A DNA stretch of 63,928 nt, filler included, from Calcarisporiella thermophila CBS 279.70 (GCF_041956535.1; 11 parts of 11 records of this genome joined end to end with filler, not necessarily neighbours in it); one strand, 5' to 3'. Counted from the first letter of the whole stretch, positions 10,474 to 22,254 are shown. Notes: generated by a model not told the origin, from the sequence alone. Program-made: numbers and translations.

Positions 10474-12829
10474 NNNNNNNNNNNNNNNNNNNNNNNNNNN
10501 NNNNNNNNNNNNNNNNNTTAATTAATTAANNNNNNNNNNNNNNNNNNNNNNNNNNNNNNNNNNNNNNNNNNNNAGCCGTATTGAATCATCCAGTGACCTA
10601 ACCCAGCTTGCATTATATGCTTTTTATGAATATGAAAATAAGAGAAGGGTATTCGCGAAGGTTATATAGTACATTGATAAAAAGGTAAGTTAGGTATAAT
10701 AATGAAAAAAAAAAATAATGGAATATTGATAATTTCATGACCAGTTAAGTTTCATTTTGCTACGCTTGCAGAAGCTTTTCTCTCTGTTATTCAAGACAAC
10801 CCAAATCATTGGCCGTGACGCCAGTATGAGTGATATCTGAGCCATGTAACAACCCCAGAAAGGCAGAGTTCACTATTTTTTTGGAGGTCGATAAAGAGAT
10901 AATGGGCGAGTGGGTTCAATACGTGATAAGTTCAAATTCTAGTACTATTTTCCCGCCGTATTCTAAGTAGGATAGTAAGATAGTAACTCGTTCACTGTAG
11001 AATATTTCAACAACATTTAGTTTTTTCTATTCATCTACTATTTCATAGGGCCGAACTACCAATGTTAAGCTAGTATATGCTAGTTTAGTTTCACGTTATG
11101 CTCAAATGATAGGAATTACAGGCATATCCCCACCACGAACAAATTGAGTGAAGTCCATAAAATCGGCATCTTGAACCGATACGCGAATACTTATTAAATG
11201 AGAGCTCCCGTTGGGAGAATGACCGTTCACCCACAGTAATGCCCGTATACCGCGAAGTATCGCCAACACAATAACAAGCGCACACCCACTTTGATGTCGA
11301 TAAACGCTTTGCTGTATTCGGTCGAACCAGTTTCAAGGAGTGGCAGAAATTTGGTTATAATATCTTGTATGATTTCCGTAGGAATCGATTAACGCTCTAC
11401 GCCCTAGGTCATATTTGATTATCCAATGGCCTACTCTCATATGACCTTCTCTAACTGCTTCCATTTTTTTTTCTTTCTGTAAACTTGAAAAAAAAAAAAA
11501 TTATGAGTGAAATATTTGAGATAAATGGTGCCGCCTCTTGAGTCAGTTTGCGACTTGAATATAAATTATATCCAGAGAGTTTTGGGGCAACTTAATATTT
11601 TTTATTTTTACCTAAATAATTTTTTTACAAACAACGCCCGTATACAAATCAATTAAATATTTGAAAAACTCGCGCTGTTACCATTGCATATTCAACAGTA
11701 TATCCTTTGCTAACTTCAAGTGAAATATTAATATTTGGAAATTTCAAGCCTGAGTAGACTTACTGGATTAGGAAATTGAAAAATCAAAGTTTCAGAAGTA
11801 TCTGCAACTGTTAATATATTTTAATAATTCGATTACTAGAGTAATATTTCTCAAATGCTTTTTTTTTTGCGTTCCTCAACTTCTCATCAAAACTTGTATA
11901 GCAAATTTATACCAAACTATACACCTATTATATCGTGATCACATTGTACCTTTATTATGGCAACTCTTTCGACTCCTATTCTCTATTTTATTTCACAGTT
12001 CGAGACACGAGTCTTGCTACACATAAAAGCGACTTTAAAAGATAATTCATCCTCTCTTGCTTATAAAAAGCAATTGGATAGCATTGCTTTTATTTTCCTT
12101 CCAGATATTGGATGTTTTTGTATACTCAATCACTAGAACACATGGATAATATCCCTACAAAAAACTCCAATAGAGAAAAGAGTTAAAAATCTTATAGAAA
12201 TTGTAGGGATGTGAAAACATATACAATCGCGAACCTTCTTTTACGATTTCTTATTCCATACTTCAAACTTTTCTCGACCCTTTCCTTTTCCTTATTTTTA
12301 TAGATTTCTTTGTAATATTACCCATTCGTTATTAATAGCAGATTAATTAAATGGGATATTTATTTAATTATTTCGCAATTATTATGGGTTGTACATTTTA
12401 CGGTAGCATTGTTCCGCTTCTTTTTCTTGCAGCTCTTATCAAATATCCATTTGGCCTGCTTGCTGATTCCATCTCTTCGCTTTCACTTGCGTCATTGACA
12501 CTCTTCCTCTTGGCCCTTTTCCTACTCTGTTTTTCCGGCTCTGCATTCTCCTGAGGTTGCTCTCCTTTTGTAACGGGTGTCTCCTGTGTTAAATTTGCTC
12601 TAATGCTATCCAATCCCTTTCGTCGTCTAATTAGAGGTATCTCTACACGAATATATGAGAAAGATTAATGGAGGATACATGAATTGATTTATCTAAGATT
12701 TGAATTGAATTTAAGGCAATTTNNNNNNNNNNNNNNNNNNNNNNNNNNNNNNNNNNNNNNNNNNNNTTAATTAATTAANNNNNNNNNNNNNNNNNNNNNN
12801 NNNNNNNNNNNNNNNNNNNNNNCTTACTG

Positions 12830-13382
12830 ACTCTATTACCACATATCAAACTTTTTCTTTAATTAGTGGATTCATTGGATTACCTGGAGAACTACGGTAA
12901 TATAGTTTCTATGTAGGTTAAAGGATTGTTATATGCACACGCCATATCACATGATATACTTTCAATCCTCTAGGATTCTATTCCGATATTTACGGGCAAA
13001 GCTAATATAGGGATTTTCATGTCTAGTTTATAGAAGAAGCCTTTTTTACATAAACCTGGATTCACTTTACTTCTATTCAGCGCATCACTCATTCCTGTCA
13101 GGGATATATCAAACTTGTAGTTCTCCTTGAGTTTTTCATTGGCATCCAAAAAAATATAATACTGGCTGGTATTGAAGTTTGAATGAAGAACTTTTCCTGT
13201 CTCTCTGAAAGAATGAGTGGATGACATGCAGTTGGCTTGAGAGCTTGAGTTGCGTACAAGCTTCGATATTTATTCGCGGAACCGCAGGTTATCCCAAGTG
13301 TACGCGAGATCTTCATGTATGATAAACTTTCGTTATATAAGAAGGCGATTCTAGATATGACTCCTTCTGGAAGTTTCTTCAT
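12830..13382 (-). pseudogene. degenerate Tc1-like transposase N-terminal (HTH) region
   Basis: MKKLPEGVISRIAFLYNESLSYMKISRTLGITCGSANKY...PLILSERQEK, then frameshifts and stops. Confidence 0.55.
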
Positions 13383-14149
13383 TAAGAGTTGCGGTAAGAA
13401 GTTGATACCAAGAAGAGCAGCAGGGTGCGAAGTGGTAACTTTAATATATATTTTAATAAATGCTCTAAATTATTTACGGTTTATAAAAAATGTTTACAAT
13501 TATTCGGGGAAGCGCATAAAGTGATCGAACAAGGGAATGACTTTAGGCGTTCATAACTCTTGCAAAAATGGTTTATCTTTGAAACCAAGTAGTGAAACAT
13601 GCAAAGCAGGGATAAAGTCATCAATGCTACGTAGTGCTCTTATTTTACAATTCTTTTTGAGCGAGAAATGGAAAATCAAAATTAAAACATAAGAACATTC
13701 GATCACATTCCGAGGGCAGTTTATATAGAAAATAAAAGAATGATCGGAAATACTAGGAGTCATCACACCATAATAAAAGACCTTCTTCATAAAAATAATT
13801 CTCATATGCTAATTTACATATTTTACTCAAAATACAGTAGAAGAATAATGATATAGGAAATACTATGGAAAAATTTCCATTTCATTATTTAGATATAGCA
13901 AAATGGACCACGTGTTCCCTTCAACGTGCGAGTTATACAGTATTCAGTACGAGGTTCAACATTCACTTACAATGGCTCTTGATATTTAATGTTCATTACT
14001 GTAAATGTCGATATGAATCAAGCTTATTAATCTAAAAATTAACTCACAGTATTTCTTTTATTTTTGCAATAGGTATTCGAGTTTGATACTATTTATTAAA
14101 TTTTAATTTGCAGTAATTCAAAATAAACTCGAGGCTAACTCTGATCCAT

Positions 14150-14500
14150 GGACGCGCAAACCTACTTAGGGTTTGTTTCCCAAATGCCACACTTTTCCAA
14201 ACGTCCAACCGGGAAGTGTTTCCAGTTCCATGGAACAATTAAAAACTCTCTTAATGATCTCTTGAATTTCCAGCAGTCTGCGTGGCAGCCCTGTCGATAC
14301 TCATACTGTAGTTACTGAAGGACGAATTGCTCCCATCCTTGCTGATGTATACCTCGTAGCTCGCGCATGATGTTGAAATGCATTTCAAACCGCTGCCTCC
14401 ACTTTTATTCCGTTCCCACCTCTCATATATTATACTGCAATATTTTCTCGAGCTGTACGCGAGAAATAAGGGCTTTCATAGGGTTACGTGAATCTGTTCC
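14150..14500 (-). pseudogene. decayed paralogue of the C-terminal module of the 15414-20586 protein
   Basis: KWRQRFEMHFNIMRELRGIHQQGWEQF* and LETLPGWTFGKVW vs WGKRFEMYFNTSKELRGKYMQGWDRL and METLPNSQPKGKVW. Confidence 0.7.
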
Positions 14501-14599
14501 AGTCTCGTTTGGAGATGTCCTTGCATCCACACTCCCGTTAGCTGCCTAAGAGACTTTGCGTATCAGAGTCTCGGAAAATTGTAAACTGCGCACCTAACT

Positions 14600-14910
14600 A
14601 TGCGAATATACGGTATATGTGTGATGCCTATTTCCCATATTCATCTCTGGTGAATGCTGCAGGAATGAAAATGAGAAGCGACAGCGGTAAAAAGTGGAGA
14701 CAGCGCTTTGAGATGTATTTCAACGCAAGGCGGGAGCTCCGGGTACCCACAAGCTAGAGAGGGATCAGGCTGTCCCTATCTATGAACATTGAATGCGCTG
14801 TCGCTCAATCTCTCCATTATGAACTCAACAGTTCAACAAGGTATATCTTGGAAAATTCATAAAGTTGGAGCCCTTTTCCGATTCAATAACTCGTAAAGTG
14901 TGAAGCGCGG
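14600..14910 (+). pseudogene. second decayed paralogue of the same C-terminal module, opposite orientation
   Basis: KWRQRFEMYFNARRELR and KLEPFSDSITRKV*. Confidence 0.6.
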
Positions 14911-15413
14911 TAACAAGCGCCATTCTGCTTCACGATTCAATGTAGAGAGTGCAAGTCTGATGAGATGTACTGGATCGTAGTTTGTATCTACTCTCAGCCG
15001 GCATCTCGTCGAATTGATTTGAGCTCTAGAAAGGTATTTCTTCGATCAACAAAGAGGGCCACTCAATCTCTTGTGCCTACGAAAGGGTGTAAGCTCAATT
15101 TGCTAGAATTTCCCATTCAAAATGTTCAATAGCATTTCTGCTGAGATTAAATAGTAAACATTTATGCCTAGTATACCGGGTAAAAATATAAGTTAGAATT
15201 GGTACAGCGTGTAAGTGGGCGCTTTCATCTTACAGTTGCCAAAAGAGAGCGTTAAGCAAATTTAGAGAGAGGGCGAGTCAACTGCACCTCGCAGCAATGT
15301 TTTATTTATATTGAATCATAAGCCACCCTCAAATCGTACTGTATATTGGATATGACTAGAGTTCTGTCCCCGAAGAAGGATACAATTTAATATTGATAAG
15401 GATAAAAGGTTCA

Positions 15414-18400
15414 TTATTTCTTGGCCAAGGTCTCATTTAATACAAAATGGACCCAAGTTTCTTTAGAGCCCCGCATTTTCAGCGAATCTTTTGGATGAGA
15501 TCTGGTTTGCCACACCTTTCCCTTGGGCTGAGAGTTTGGGAGTGTTTCCATACGCATAAATCTGGCAAGCAGACAGTCATCGAGCTTTTTCATATCCTCA
15601 GCAGCCAAGTTTAGGCATGTTTGTCGGTAGAGCCGAAGATATTGAAGTCGATCCCATCCCTGCATATATTTGCCGCGAAGTTCTTTAGATGTGTTGAAAT
15701 ACATCTCAAAACGCTTTCCCCACGACAGACCAGCAGGATGGCCAACCTTTGATCCCCCAAGATTAACCCGTACAGAAAACATAAAATATGGGTTGCGTAC
15801 ATACCGCTTGATCTCATCAATTGTAAAATTAACTCTCTCCAACTCTTGATATAACGGATTGCTTAGGTGGACGGCTGGATTTGGAAACAGTGACCACAAA
15901 TCTTTCTTGAATTCTCGAAAGATTTGTCTTGCCATCTGCCGCATAGTCCTCTCTAATCCATGGGCACCTTTCAGCTGATCTTCATTGCAAGGGAGCTCGA
16001 TATCAGTGTCGCTCTCGTCAGTTTCATATGCATCTAATGATTTAGGGAAAAAAAAACATAAAATATAAATGAGTGACAAGGGGGGATGCGAGGAGTAAAC
16101 ATTTCAATCAAACAGGTCATCTTGATTGACTGATTTCTGATAAATTTACCTGGATTCCGAGTGATATAATCTTCGGGTTGCAACCTATCAGTCGGAGTAT
16201 GAGGGTTTCTACTTGAGCTAGCTTGGATCGCGTGAGGTTGGTTCTGCACCCTCTTTCTGAGATTTACAGTACGACGAAAACCGTGAACTTTAGCAAATCG
16301 CCCCTCATCAAACTCGAAGCTAAGAAACAGATTTTGGGGAATAAAAGAAGGAATGGCACCCAAGTTGAACTTTACCATCCCATTCAATGCCTCGACAAAG
16401 TGAGGTTGCCGTAAAAACGACCCATAGTCATCAGGGCGCGAGATAATACTTTTGATAAGCCATACTATGATGCCCGTCAAATTGACACTACAACAAAGCA
16501 AATATAGAGTAGAGAGATGAGTATCGTAATTAACCAAAAAAAAACAAAAAAAATGAAAATCCAAGGATCTCGCTCAAAAAAAGTATGATCCTTCATTAGA
16601 TCATGGTTTTTTTTTCCTGGAAAATTGGGCTTTTACACTACCTTTGTACTTCCACACGGTCTTTTATCGCAGTTAGACTCTGGCGGCGGAGGATTTCGTC
16701 ATATGCCTTGAGTTTGGCCAATTTAAATTGGCTGACTAGAGATGTTGGGACAGCAGCAAATGCTCTTTTGGAAACAAAGGAACGAGCGCGCTCCTGAACC
16801 ACGTCGAACACCTTTCTAAAGGCAGAGAGGCTCATACGCATCTCAAGCCTTACCCCAAACGACTCATTTTTCGCGCTCGTCCATGCAGTTTTCATCGCAC
16901 TCACGCTGTCCTGGTATCTCTTGTTGTAGAACAAAGCGTCGTCCGGATCGAATTTAAGAACGCCTGCCTTGCTGCCCTTCGTGCAGCTGTACAGAACCTC
17001 TTTCTCTAGGTGATAGGCTTGAATAAAAGCGCAGTGGATCGCTTTCCGAATCCTCATTGGCCATTCGGCGGCCTTCCCTCCCAACGTAGAGCAATGGTTC
17101 CAACTATCCCTTCGTGGCAGCGCGGTTGCTTTGCATTGCTGGAATAGTTCGTCGAGAAACGTGGCTCGCCACAGGAGGGTTCGGGCGCCAGAGCGTTTAT
17201 CTTGAAAATACCATTCCACACCAAGATCCACCATGATCGCATCGCTGGACATTTGCTCAAAATCCAACGACGGACACTTTTCCTGCACGTAGCTCATTGT
17301 GTCGGAATAGCTGGATTTGGTGGCGAGCTTAAGGTTTTTCGCGTAAATGTGAAAGAAAAAATCGCGAAAATCCTCGAGACTTCGCGTGGTTTCTACCCTT
17401 TTGCGCATTTCCTCCACTACTCGTGGTATGAAGGAGCTATGTAAGACGAACCCGGGATACTTGAATTCTCCTTTGCGAGTCATTGAATTTTTCATGGTGA
17501 GATCATACGAGAGAGGGAAATGACAATGGGCATCTACCGTAGTCACGGCCAAAATAGAAGGCAGGAGAAGTTCATCGTAGAATCTGGCCATGTCTTTTGA
17601 AGTGACGAAATTGATCCAACGCCCTTTCTCCGACCTTTTTCGCAATCGTGGAAAAAGAATGAGTAGCCTAAAGTTGCCCATGGGCCCAAAGTGGGCAAGC
17701 TCAAAGTTCGGTATTTGTGAAAGCCGCACCTCCCCTCCCTCACTGTCGGGAATTTGCACGTACAAGTGATTGTGAGTGGTGAGGGTCGCTGAGCGATTTG
17801 GAAACGGGAAGATTTTAATTTCTTCCTTCACGGGAATTACATCTCCGGTCCAGAGAAAGGAATCAATATCAACCGCAATCCCAATCTTGTATAACAGGTA
17901 CGAAAAAAAAAATAACATCAGTAGCTGCCAATGATAATGCTGCTGGATTAGGGAACAAAAAGTGATTCCCAAGAAAATGCTGCTTTACCTCTCTCTCATC
18001 AAAACCAAAATGATCGTCGAATGTTAAACGGATTTTCTTTCCCTGATCATCTTTCCCGCAAACTACCCATTGAATCAATCTATCCATCGAGTTCTCAGAG
18101 GAGGATTCTAATTTCGATAAAAAGGTTTCCAGCGTGTAATTTGCCTCGTTGTCAACGCAAGTCTTATCCAATCCATCTTGATCAACAGAAGCCATTGAAC
18201 CCGTATTTAAAATAGAATCCATTAATACTTTGTCGTCAAGCGTAGAGAACATTGCATATCGGTTCGTTGGGCAGTTTGGGGTAGGAAGTAAGCGCGGTAC
18301 GACAGGCTCTTCCTTTTCCTCGGATTCTTCTGACCCTTTATCTCCTTCTGACTCGTAGTATTCCTTGAAAACTTCGAATTTGTCGTATTCTTCCGGCCCC

Positions 18401-20586
18401 ACAATTTCCTCGGATTCACTTGATTCCTCATATTCTTCAGATTCTCTATACTCCTCTGATTCGTTTGACGCTTCGGACGCATCAGATACTTCGGATTCAT
18501 CTGAGGGATCCCAGTAGATGACATTATCTTTCTAATCCAATTGAATAGTCGTGAGTTTTGGTTAAGCTCAAAAGTGGGTTAAAAAGATTCAATCAGACAC
18601 ATTTCGACAAAGAGGGGTCTAATTATCCTAGACAAAATGGTCCAACATAACTTAGGCTACTTACATTAAACTCAATTTGAGGGATAACCACACGGACAAT
18701 GTTGTTTCGAAATTCGCCTCTTCGTTGTCTGGCTATTTCACTTGGCGTGAAATGGCGCGGTGGATCAAAATATAAATCAGTCCCGTCCAACATCTTCACC
18801 CACTCTACAAGGGTGAAGACCTCCGGCTCGGATTCAACAAGAGCAGGTAGCGAGCTAATTTTACCAGCAAGAATAGCTTTGCGCATAAATTCTCGAAAAA
18901 CACCTGCCGGTAAGATAATCTTAGCAGGATCTAGTCCTGTAGCCAAGGCAACCAAGATCATACAAGCGAGTGGGCCGCAATCGAAATTATTCGTCTGCTT
19001 TATGCACGGTTCAGTTGCAGAGTTGTGACTCCACCCTCGACCCACTCTCCACCCCAGCCCCTCCTTCAGAAAATTGGCGTACAGAGCATAATCTTGGTCA
19101 TCTGCCATCTCAAATACCGTACAGTAACAACGACCCGATTTCGTTGCCCGGTCAAAACTGTAAACATTCCAATGCTGGTTGTTGTTATTGAGGAACACCG
19201 CACGCTCGTAGCGAGGTGGAAAATCCAAATTCTTCCCATTTGGCCGTATACTGCTACTTTGACGAGAGGACCGCGATCCTAAAGGGAGAAACTGGCGTAA
19301 CGTGGATAGGCCAATATAGAGGTCGCTTGCAAGCATGGCAGCGTCCAAGTACTCCTTCAATATTTGCAGAAAATAATCGATGATCTCATCGTTAAGCCAA
19401 TGAGGCTCGTTAAGAAGGTCAATATGCTTCAAAGCGGCCCATTGTGGCGGCTTATACAGGAAAACGTTGCTTTCGCTCTTTCTGGAAACGGAGAAATGAA
19501 ACAATTTAGAAAGAAGCATATTGCCAATGGTTAAAAATTGGCTTTCAACGCAAAGTAGTTACAAACGTTAAAAGCATTGAGCTTCCATACCCTATTTCTG
19601 AGACTTTGGATTTTCTGCGGGATGCTATTGAGGGCTCAGGCGATAATGCATGACAAGGGGGGGAAATAGGACGATTGGTGAGAGAAGAGCACGATGGAGA
19701 AGATTCAGTCAGTGAGTTGGGAGATTCAGATGGTGCGGGAGGTATACAACTGGACCCCACTATATGTTGAAAAATAAATGCAGAAATTAACTAATTGAAC
19801 CCATAAAATCCGCCTTAATTTGCTAATATTTCCTCTTTAAAAAATACGAGAGATAGAGGGAAAATATTTACCGGTTTCAGCGTGAGGAGATATATATTCT
19901 GATTGTAATGGTTTAGCAACTTCATTCGCATTGATCTCAATGTGATCATCCGAAGCGATAAATTCAGAGGAATTGTTGTGATTATCGACATCAATGTAAA
20001 TGGGGCCCGAAGGTGAGAGCTCTTTGGAAGAAAAGGCTTGCTCACACACGTGTATCTACAATACCGGGAATGAAGACAGTTTGGAAATTTGATGCCGATT
20101 AACATCACTTACAGGTGTAATAGCCGGCCTGTCCACCATCACATTGACATCTTCAAATTCCGGAGCCTCAATTACCGTTCCCAGCACTGATTCATTGCGC
20201 TAAGTAATGGGTTAGATTGGAAATGGCTTCAATATATAATTTACACTTTATGGCCTTTGTCTCTATGTTACCTCATTGACTTCTTCATAACTCAATGTAC
20301 TCACCATCGACTCTGGCTTCTCTTTCTCTGTATCTTCGGAGGTCATTGGTTGCTCCTTCAGTAAACTCATCTCCAATCTGCGTTTTTTCCGCTGATAATA
20401 TTCTCGGCTGCTTTTCCTCTTTCGCTCGCGCAACTCATTGGCCTTTTCTGGATCGTTCATCGCTTCCCTGTAATATTTACGCTGACGCTCCGCATGTGCT
20501 TTTTTGGCACTCTCTATTCTCGCGTCGATGTTCGCATGAGCTTGTTGAATTTTAGAAACGTCCTTGATGGGAGGATTATTGACCAT
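15414..20586 (-). CDS. 9-exon, 1438-aa protein: basic N-terminus, Ulp1/C48-like cysteine protease, acidic linker, large unassigned domain
   Basis: Exons 20586-20272, 20199-20113, 20055-19872, 19759-19591, 19481-18665, 18531-17989, 17885-16642, 16487-16150, 16033-15414. All introns GT-AG, phases match, total 4317 nt. Protease motifs WLNDEIIDYF, NNNNQHW, QTNNFDCG. Confidence 0.8.
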
Positions 20587-21057
20587 GACGAGCGATGAAT
20601 TCCAAAGCTTGATAAAATCCTCAGAACGAGACGATCAGGGGGAGATTTTAATAGTCTCTGAAGCAAACCACGTGTGTTGACAATTTGTATTTTGCATTGA
20701 GGGCGTTGGAATTTGTGCCTTTCTCAGATATCCAGTCATTACCACTTGCGACAGATTTCCAAGCAGTGAAATAAGAAGGTCCTCAATGGAGTTGGCCAAT
20801 AGGGGAGGAATGCTGAACTAAGCTATTGAAGTTGATTACACGGGAATAGACCCAAAGCCGAATTTCAAAGCGCTTCTCATCTCTAATTCTAAAGGGATGC
20901 ATATGATACTGTATTACCCCAGCTACTCAACGACCTACTTGAGCCAACTGATATCTTATTTACTATCCGGTCCAAGGTAAAAAATAATGCTTATCGGTGT
21001 ACACTACAGTATATCGAAATATAGCGGATATTGGGTGTGGGAGGGATCTAGTATTAA

Positions 21058-21274
21058 TGTAATAAACATAAGTAGGGTTCGATAGATACTAATGTTTATT
21101 ACACTAAAATAAATTCGTAAAAAGACGTAAAGTCGGTTCCTAAAGAAATTCAGTTAAAGATTCGGTAAAGACGTAATTAAGTTCTGCAAGTGATTTTATA
21201 CGTAAAGTAAAAATATCCGAGATCGATTGTCAATAAATTAAACATATAATTTATTAGCTACTCTACTTGTTACA
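21058..21274 (-). mobile_element. solo LTR with 5-bp TSD (attaa)
   Basis: TG...CA ends; attaa at 21053-21057 and 21275-21279; homologous to 10156-10366. Confidence 0.88.
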
Positions 21275-22254
21275 ATTAACCTCTAATATCCCATCAAAAT
21301 AATTGAAGTTTCTTTGACGTCCTCCACCTCTTTGATGGATTTCTCATCTCTGTATTCAGAAAAGATACAGTAACCCACCTCGCAGTGGTTCAAAATAATA
21401 GCCACTTCTTGCCGTAGCCAACTGATTGACAATCGGATGAAATCTCCGAGTTGCTTTCCGGCATCTGAAACCGCTGAATTTATTTGTTTGCATTATAGGA
21501 ACCAATCACCAAAATTGGAACTGACAGGTCATTGTCCAATTAATCGCCCATTTCCCTTTCTCTCTTATATTAAATTTTACTGTAATTGTTTATGCTGGCT
21601 GCCCTTCTTTTTAGAGCATCTCTCCCTGCTAGAATCTTTTGCTAATATTTTCGAAAATTTCCGGCAGTACTGTCATTTTAATATAAATTACTCTCGTCAG
21701 CTTGTTGTGTATCACCCATCGCAATTGATTATCTTTCTTCAATATACATTCATTCTTTGAGATAAATTGTAGTATTAGGAATCGGAAATATTGGGGATCA
21801 TTTCGTATTTGGGTTGTTGGTCAAGCGTCTTCATTGTAATATGACTTCATAGCACTAATAAAAAATATACCAACAATACCCTGAATTTAATGGATCATAT
21901 TTCTTACTTTATATCCAAATTTTTCTCACTTTGTATTTTCCATTTAACCTCAGAGTGTTCTCACTAAAGGGTTAAAAAAGAGCAAAGATATCAACCAGTA
22001 GTGATAATGATGCGATTATTGGAAATAATCTATAGATATACTGTATTTTTATTAATTTAAATATAAATCTAGATACAAAAATGCCAAAATATCACCCGGG
22101 AACTTACTGTGTTGCTTTGCTTTCTTATCCTTACTCGGGAAAAGTTATAAGTAGNNNNNNNNNNNNNNNNNNNNNNNNNNNNNNNNNNNNNNNNNNNNTT
22201 AATTAATTAANNNNNNNNNNNNNNNNNNNNNNNNNNNNNNNNNNNNNNNNNNNN

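Follow-up and report, generated by a model that had tools for sequence, protein, structure and literature searches.

A fungal gene that fuses a Ulp1-type protease to a conserved core with a predicted TBP-like fold, a candidate tyrosine nickase

Gene organization

We analysed a window of DNA from the fungus Calcarisporiella thermophila (assembly GCA_041956535.1), a stretch of 63,928 nucleotides whose coordinates are used throughout unless another locus is named. The gene in question lies on the minus strand at 15414-20586, within a piece (12823-22154) that corresponds to the first 9332 bases of scaffold MU987618.1 and has a scaffold gap at its end. The gene encodes a Ulp1-type cysteine protease fused to a conserved core, which we propose as a candidate DNA nickase related to the Rep_trans initiators. 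Mapping of the database protein onto the window revealed nine exons from ATG to stop, comprising 4317 nt with the stop codon included and encoding 1438 amino acids (aa). The eight introns, of 57–154 nt, all have GT...AG boundaries and consistent phases. A search of representative sequences with exon 7 as the query (16641-17885, minus strand) identified the product at 100% identity as XP_069245474.1/KAL1914188.1 (VTP21DRAFT_9694), an 'uncharacterized protein', and the gene itself is therefore already in GenBank under that description. An earlier note on this DNA, hereafter the sequence-only reading, had assembled the same intact gene of nine exons and 1438 aa with GT-AG junctions throughout, and its product is identical to XP_069245474.1. 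The splice junctions rest on the public annotation, the unbroken frame and homology that crosses the last three exons into a paralogue. The database protein (P0002, XP_069245474.1) was used for full-length analyses, and the exons were searched individually.

All nine exons are on the minus strand. Exon 1 (20272-20586) encodes a Lys/Arg/Glu-rich N-terminus without a Pfam match, 23% Lys+Arg in composition, which probably functions in nuclear targeting or nucleic-acid binding. Exons 2 (20113-20199) and 3 (19872-20055) were located by protein mapping, and exon 4 (19591-19759) is Ser/Pro-rich. The Ulp1/SENP-like clan CE cysteine protease domain is found in exon 5 (18665-19481). Exon 6 (17989-18531) encodes an acidic Glu/Ser-rich linker (34% Glu, 17% Ser) and then a less conserved lead-in to the core. 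The core itself (residues ~706-1105) occupies exon 7 (16642-17885), where it is predicted to form a TBP-like/Rep_trans-like curved β-sheet, followed by the start of a long helical hairpin that ends in exon 8 (16150-16487) ahead of a poorly conserved linker. Exon 9 (15414-16033) was again placed by protein mapping. The ~730 aa C-terminal to the acidic linker have no Pfam assignment and comprise the core of ~400 aa, the helical hairpin and a C-terminal domain of ~190 aa. This order of basic N-terminus, protease, acidic linker and ~730 aa without a Pfam match is as the sequence-only reading had described it.

The protease domain

Searched with the protein alone, the Pfam C48 model (Peptidase_C48) scored 16.9 bits, under the cut-off of 20.7; neither the full protein nor any exon gave another Pfam match. 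The paralogue P0003 passes this cut-off (24.6), and C48 was detected in 9 of 40 full-length relatives. A family profile built from 11 N-terminal domains (A5) was then compared to the Protein Data Bank (PDB), where it matched yeast Ulp1 (1euv_A, E 1.9e-25) over nearly the entire catalytic domain and human SENP1/2/5 (E about 1e-20) over ~180 residues. In the family alignment, the catalytic His355 (19172-19174) and Cys420 (18977-18979) are invariant and Gln414 is nearly invariant, while P0002 and most aligned sequences also have the Asp that follows the H-W motif. The clan CE assignment made in the sequence-only reading is correct as judged by profile comparison, and the protease looks active. 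A word-indexed homologue search with the Ulp1 exon gave no match, probably owing to its length window.

Ulp1 domains are recurrent passengers of eukaryotic DNA transposons, among them Mutator, CACTA, Zisupton and Ginger elements. Like these systems, the present gene joins an entire C48 domain to a putative DNA-processing enzyme and is associated with repeats. Unlike them, it has a partner domain other than a DDE transposase, and the two are fused into a single polypeptide in which the protease lies N-terminal to its partner.

Predicted structure and conservation of the core

We used AF2 (AlphaFold) to explore the structure of the core from a 62-sequence alignment. The model, with a predicted local distance difference test score (pLDDT) of 91.1 and a predicted template modelling score (pTM) of 0.88, shows a large antiparallel sheet, and the long helical hairpin follows the core. 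A homodimer prediction scored 0.00, with the alignment not used and the fold uncertain, and is no evidence either way.

Conservation was counted among 164 family members wherever a residue is aligned. D711 (125/125) and D713 (127/128) form a D711-I-D713 motif on the first predicted strand (17862-17870), and K891 (17328-17330) is kept in 158 of 159 sequences directly after a predicted strand. D925 (17226-17228; 156/156) begins the strand D925-x-G-x-E929 (17214-17228), in which the position at +2 is Gly in 134 sequences and Ala in 22, and the position at +4 is Glu in 92 of 162. Y996 (17013-17015) is present in all 148 sequences and sits at a predicted strand end within the motif Q994-x-Y996-x-x-x-K1000 (17001-17021), where Gln and Lys are found in 106 and 103 of the 148, respectively. 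The strand R1051-x-E1053-x-R1055 (16836-16850) carries R1051 (16848-16850; 140/141), E1053 (141/141) and R1055 (136/141). These motifs are all encoded on the minus strand, and in the model the conserved residues take alternating i, i+2 positions on separate strands.

The sequence-only reading had singled out D925, Y996 and R1051 at exactly these coordinates, together with E929, K1000 and E1053. In the family alignment D925, Y996, R1051 and E1053 are among the positions kept most strictly, and E929 and K1000 vary as given above. The spacing between the motifs, which that reading had considered too long, is explained by helices inserted between the strands of the model. The invariant D711-x-D713 is a fourth element beyond the motifs listed there, and its position on the first strand is in line with the third metal ligand of Rep_trans (RepDE D46).

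The sequence-only reading had referred to Ulp1-bearing transposons, and such passengers are established knowledge that would suit a divergent DDE/RNase-H-like transposase (Mutator, CACTA, Zisupton/KDZ) in this region; a HUH endonuclease would be the other familiar candidate. We consider either highly improbable. Pfam transposase, KDZ and Helitron models match none of the 40 full-length relatives, the core is confidently predicted as a large antiparallel sheet, and no RNase-H-like or HUH fold is present among the top 50 matches listed in each of four fold searches with the core. The conserved columns also contain no His-hydrophobic-His motif.

Comparison to Rep_trans and Rep-Arvir initiators

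Many bacterial plasmids, phages and conjugative elements rely on TBP-fold tyrosine nickases to start rolling-circle replication and conjugative transfer. We compared the core to a Rep_trans (PF02486)/MOBT set comprising RepC/RepD of pT181 plasmids, RepSTK1 and RelSt3, with the structures 4CWC, 4CWE and 4CIJ. The Rep_trans active site consists of D46, R140-x-D142-x-A144-x-D146, R189-x-Y191-x-K193 and R212-x-E214; the metal ligands D46, D142 and E214 are each located on a separate strand, and the topology of the sheet is shared with TBP (PMC4797284).

In a structure search of the PDB, Rep_trans crystal structures rank highest among those matches to the core that cover more than 150 residues. The model and alignment agree with Rep_trans in order and strand placement: D713 is followed by D925-x-[G/A], then by Y996 and then by R1051-x-E1053. 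We propose that D711-I-D713 provides a metal ligand equivalent to RepDE D46, that the D925 strand is the equivalent of the RxDxAxD strand, of which it retains the D-x-A part as D925-x-[G/A], that Y996 is the catalytic nucleophile, and that R1051-x-E1053 matches the R-x-E motif R212-x-E214, in which the Glu is a metal ligand. The structural alignments start at model residue 17 on RepDE residue 39 and at model residues 15-16 on RepSTK1 residues 0-1, and D713 (model residue 24) would fall on D46/D9 if the first strand is ungapped. A search of protein-language-model features placed Rep_trans and Phage_CRI clusters among its weak matches (score 0.84). In common with Rep_trans/MOBT, the core is predicted to form a curved antiparallel TBP-type sheet, with an invariant Tyr on a strand and one invariant carboxylate on each of three different strands, ordered alike in both (N-terminal Asp; Asp-x-[Gly/Ala]; Arg-x-Glu). 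It differs in being about 130 residues longer through helical insertions, in its eukaryotic host and introns, and in its fusion to a Ulp1 protease and a C-terminal domain of no known fold.

A 2026 study, which stated that TBP-fold tyrosine nickases had been regarded as confined to bacteria, extended their range to archaea with the Rep-Arvir initiators (DUF7845, PF25227) of archaeal pleolipoviruses and plasmids (PMC13107129). When the core was searched against the viral structure library BFVD, its matches were TBP proteins and inovirus replication proteins, including A0A2N9QVX7. A validated archaeal Rep-Arvir initiator gives the same kind of viral-library matches, including A0A2N9QVX7 (PMC13107129). 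The two families are alike in being tied to Rep_trans solely by predicted structure, in having a conserved Tyr and acidic residues, and in matching giant-virus TBP and inovirus Rep proteins in this library. However, Rep-Arvir is backed by experiments and scored better (TM about 0.5; E down to 5.7e-5) than the core did here, and the two differ in the domain of life of the host and in protein architecture.

We interpret the core as a metal-dependent TBP-fold tyrosine DNA nickase of the Rep_trans/MOBT and Rep-Arvir type, carried by a gene of a selfish or subtelomere-associated family, an interpretation for which belief and doubt are about evenly balanced. A number of results weigh against it. Foldseek comparison of the core to the PDB and BFVD gave nothing at E≤0.001 (best E 0.003), a shape search of the ESM Atlas gave TM by query of 0.35 or lower, and neither the protein nor its exons matched the Rep_trans Pfam model. 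Pfam and PHROG scans of the 62 aligned members at E≤10 found no Rep_trans, Phage_CRI, DUF7845 or other replication-protein family, and DUF7845 likewise does not match the protein itself. In hhalign the probability was 0.6% against a shallow RepC alignment and 0.2% against an 11-sequence Rep_trans alignment (down to ~30% identity); these template alignments, made from pT181 RepC relatives and from plasmid and genome loci, are shallow (Neff 1.4–3.5), so this is a weak negative. Within the motifs, the position at -2 from the Tyr has Gln where Rep_trans has Arg, the Lys stands at +4 instead of +2 and is present in about 70% of members, the leading Arg of RxDxAxD is missing, and its last acidic position is Glu in the 92 of 162 sequences noted above. 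The conserved residues would cluster in space, as judged from secondary structure alone. No helicase, origin (hairpin), termini or target-site duplication was identified for the family gene, and the DNA identity of the Calcarisporiella paralogues, at most 63%, gives no sign of recent movement in this genome. We do not file the core as a member of PF02486. The nickase-like domain proposed in the sequence-only reading has Rep_trans structures at the top of its large fold matches, but sequence and profile comparison is negative.

A TBP-fold domain could also have another job, such as nucleic-acid binding without cutting, phosphoesterase activity or nucleotidyl transfer, in which case the likeness to Rep_trans would reflect general architecture. 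We regard this possibility as unlikely. Three carboxylates, a Tyr and Arg/Lys residues that alternate along separate strands and are invariant across about 160 divergent sequences would not be expected of a plain DNA binder. The order in which they follow one another and the strands on which they lie are those of the Rep_trans catalytic set, as is the Gly or Ala at +2 from the second Asp.

Distribution of the core family

Among 1.8 billion representatives, the core family comprises 374 clusters at E≤0.001 and 151 at E≤1e-10. The named members come from Calcarisporiella (Mucoromycota), at least five Ceratobasidium isolates (Basidiomycota) and Cladochytrium tenue (Chytridiomycota), and most of the other members looked up are on metagenome or sequencing-run contigs of 2–10 kb (JGI/IMG, ENA, Logan). 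No Pfam model covers the core or the C-terminal domain, and a sequence search of the PDB with the core profile gave chance Hsp90 matches alone (E>0.06). A word-indexed homologue search with exon 7 returned one match, a truncated paralogue. A scan of a bacterial and archaeal genome collection with exon 7 found no members, nor did a scan of viral contigs with a closer alignment (A7), and metagenome contigs scanned for the core family yielded three loci with uninformative neighbours. An insect protein from the first search (P0140) does not match the family profile and was dropped as spurious.

Besides the protease, a SIR2 domain is found in 2 of 40 full-length relatives (E 1.8e-28) and a chromodomain in one relative. 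The relative with a SIR2 name, P0036, is presumably one of the two that bear this domain. Some relatives have wrong public names, among them 'alpha-1,3-glucan synthase ags1' and 'capsular polysaccharide export protein'; these observations on domains and names concern P0036, P0115, P0280-P0286 and P0071.

One relative of 998 aa is encoded without introns on the Logan contig SRR27420421_855651 (L098, 4773 bp) and combines Ulp1, core and C-terminal domains. Three 177-bp tandem repeats (L098 873-1411) precede it, and the contig has neither a terminal overlap nor inverted ends. Near-identical proteins are found on contigs of 4.8–5.1 kb under JGI, NCBI and Logan, of which the JGI and NCBI records may be one contig (both 5082 bp).

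Copies, decayed fragments and chromosome ends

The C-terminal α/β domain (residues 1245-1438; 15417-15998, minus strand) is conserved in at least 50 family members and was modelled at pLDDT 90; structure searches gave no known-fold match and no ESM Atlas lead. Two decayed fragments of this domain lie 0.7–1.2 kb downstream of the gene. One is part of a second copy, at 14169-14488 on the minus strand, found by tblastn at 42–67% identity, and the other is in the opposite orientation at 14611-14742 on the plus strand, with a 52-nt inverted repeat (81%) shared with 14355-14406. The inverted repeats here, 14355-14406/14690-14741 and 14694-14727/15690-15723, are decayed copies of the last exon that face each other and the intact exon 9, which suggests local duplication or inversion beside the gene. 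The sequence-only reading had placed the gene among transposon debris in a contig free of housekeeping genes. There are indeed no housekeeping genes in this piece, in which no other open reading frame (ORF) has a Pfam match, but the debris is mostly that of the same family.

Calcarisporiella has four paralogues (P0001 to P0004), which share up to ~50% protein identity and up to 63% DNA identity. A truncated one is located ~6 kb from where a 672-kb scaffold ends; gapped scaffolds of 2–14 kb carry the rest. In P0003 (L004 3484-8841) a scaffold gap splits the gene, and the C-terminal domain resumes at L004 8866-9810, where it is annotated as a separate 258-aa gene; the 838-aa model of P0003 is therefore an assembly artefact. 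The gene in the window is not flanked by terminal repeats, whether inverted or direct. The Calcarisporiella copies are repeat-like in behaviour, but old. The sequence-only reading had proposed a mobile element, for which this genome offers no termini, target-site duplications or recent copies.

In Ceratobasidium sp. AG-Ba, one cluster at 90% identity has eight members on Mb-sized chromosomes in two assemblies. The six copies that we fetched share at least 17.9 kb at 99.5–99.9% identity. Five of the six lie 10.7–48.5 kb from a chromosome end, and the sixth is 86 kb away and has a terminal position in the other assembly; in all six the 3' end of the gene faces the chromosome end. The left end of the 17.9-kb unit is common to three flank contexts, while the comparison with the L007/L095 copy is the only one that defines its right end. 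No terminal repeats bound the unit, and telomere repeats were found in none of the fetched loci, so that the family is linked to telomeres by position only. A subtelomeric duplicon accounts for the AG-Ba pattern no less well than a transposon does, and multiple copies in Ceratobasidium, taken as a sign of mobility, are equally explained by subtelomeric duplication.

Yeast Y' elements and telomere-linked RecQ helicase genes are subtelomeric gene families of fungi. The near-identical Ceratobasidium copies at several chromosome ends, in a fixed orientation, resemble these families, from which the present one differs in the lack of a helicase domain and of telomere repeats in the fetched DNA. The same or similar DNA-cutting chemistry might thus serve a domesticated host family in chromosome-end recombination or maintenance, with copies made by duplication and gene conversion and not by transposition. 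The uniform outward 3' ends of the AG-Ba copies near chromosome ends, in a block that carries other genes, would agree with such a role, as would the Calcarisporiella copy close to a scaffold end with the rest on small gapped scaffolds, the eight introns, the old paralogues and the failure to find transposon termini. We nevertheless judge it unlikely, given the truncated and decayed copies beside intact ones, the patchy distribution over three fungal phyla, the Ulp1, SIR2 and chromo fusions typical of selfish elements, the single left end of the 17.9-kb unit in three flank contexts, and the lack of telomere repeats.

Taken with the nickase interpretation of the core, the family behaves more like a gene of a selfish or subtelomere-associated element than like a housekeeping gene, being patchy, often multicopy, and found at fungal chromosome ends and on repeat-rich contigs. 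This view is based on the decayed copies that adjoin the gene, the divergent paralogues, the near-identical Ceratobasidium copies and the SIR2/chromo fusions. The safest way to describe the family is as selfish or subtelomere-associated, and mobility is a hypothesis.

Several further features were observed in the Ceratobasidium loci. The 17.9-kb unit (L007 3408-21334, CP059649.1; also L008, L009 and L095-L097) occurs at three chromosome ends per assembly. Within it, the family gene lies between two conserved, unannotated minus-strand genes, one of ~520–560 aa and one of ~440–476 aa with a weak LRR hint. Two AG-Ba copies remain alike up to the point where the fetched locus stops, ~8.7 kb before the chromosome end, so the shared block may span ~31 kb. 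A perfect 40-nt palindrome occurs twice near the left end of the unit (L007 3713-3752 and 3890-3930, 137 nt apart) and once in L009; it might serve as a hairpin origin or mark where a nested element ends. The unit also contains fragments of a pogo/Tc1-type DDE_1 transposase (L007 5073-5838), and in one copy the stretch from the family gene to the chromosome end is interrupted by a full Ty3/gypsy element (L097 18371-25244).

Proposed mechanism and significance

In the mechanism that we infer for the candidate nickase, with DNA as the putative substrate, a divalent metal would be held by D713, D925 and E1053, which come from three separate strands of the curved β-sheet. Y996 would attack the DNA phosphodiester to form a covalent link to the 5' end, and R1051, R1055 and K891 or K1000 would position the phosphate. 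The protease may process its own protein or strip SUMO from host factors, as is assumed for transposon-borne Ulp1 domains. The sequence-only reading is partly supported: its protease stands, its nickase is a plausible candidate, and its mobility is a hypothesis.

To our knowledge, all known eukaryotic rolling-circle-type elements use unrelated HUH enzymes, and our literature search found no report of a eukaryotic Rep_trans-like enzyme. We regard the candidate described here as real and probably novel, with its mechanism conditional on the predicted fold and conserved residues. More tentatively, the family may represent the first eukaryotic lineage of TBP-fold tyrosine nickases and an unrecognised class of fungal selfish DNA, perhaps rolling-circle-like at chromosome ends, that carries a SUMO-type protease. 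If the core is a nickase, this enzyme class would extend to a third domain of life, with a new eukaryotic branch and a new architecture; it would point to unrecognised eukaryotic selfish DNA, possibly tied to chromosome ends, and would provide a function for several hundred 'hypothetical', partly misnamed, fungal proteins. If it is not, the core still defines a large fungal domain family, conserved and as yet without a name, whose set of invariant residues resembles that of an enzyme.

Other features of the piece

Two further features lie in the piece that carries the gene. A 94-aa ORF at 13098-13382 on the minus strand has no Pfam match, and its start resembles by eye the helix-turn-helix of a Tc1-like transposase. 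A ~225-bp repeat at 21055-21274 (L003 881-1100), 470 bp upstream of the ATG, is 85% identical to a second site at L005 5796-6021, on the scaffold of the paralogue P0001, where it is not adjacent to the family gene. The whole repeat folds no better than shuffled sequences (z -1.0). At one end it has a conserved hairpin (21054-21107), whose arms are 21 nt long, and it could be a small non-autonomous repeat.

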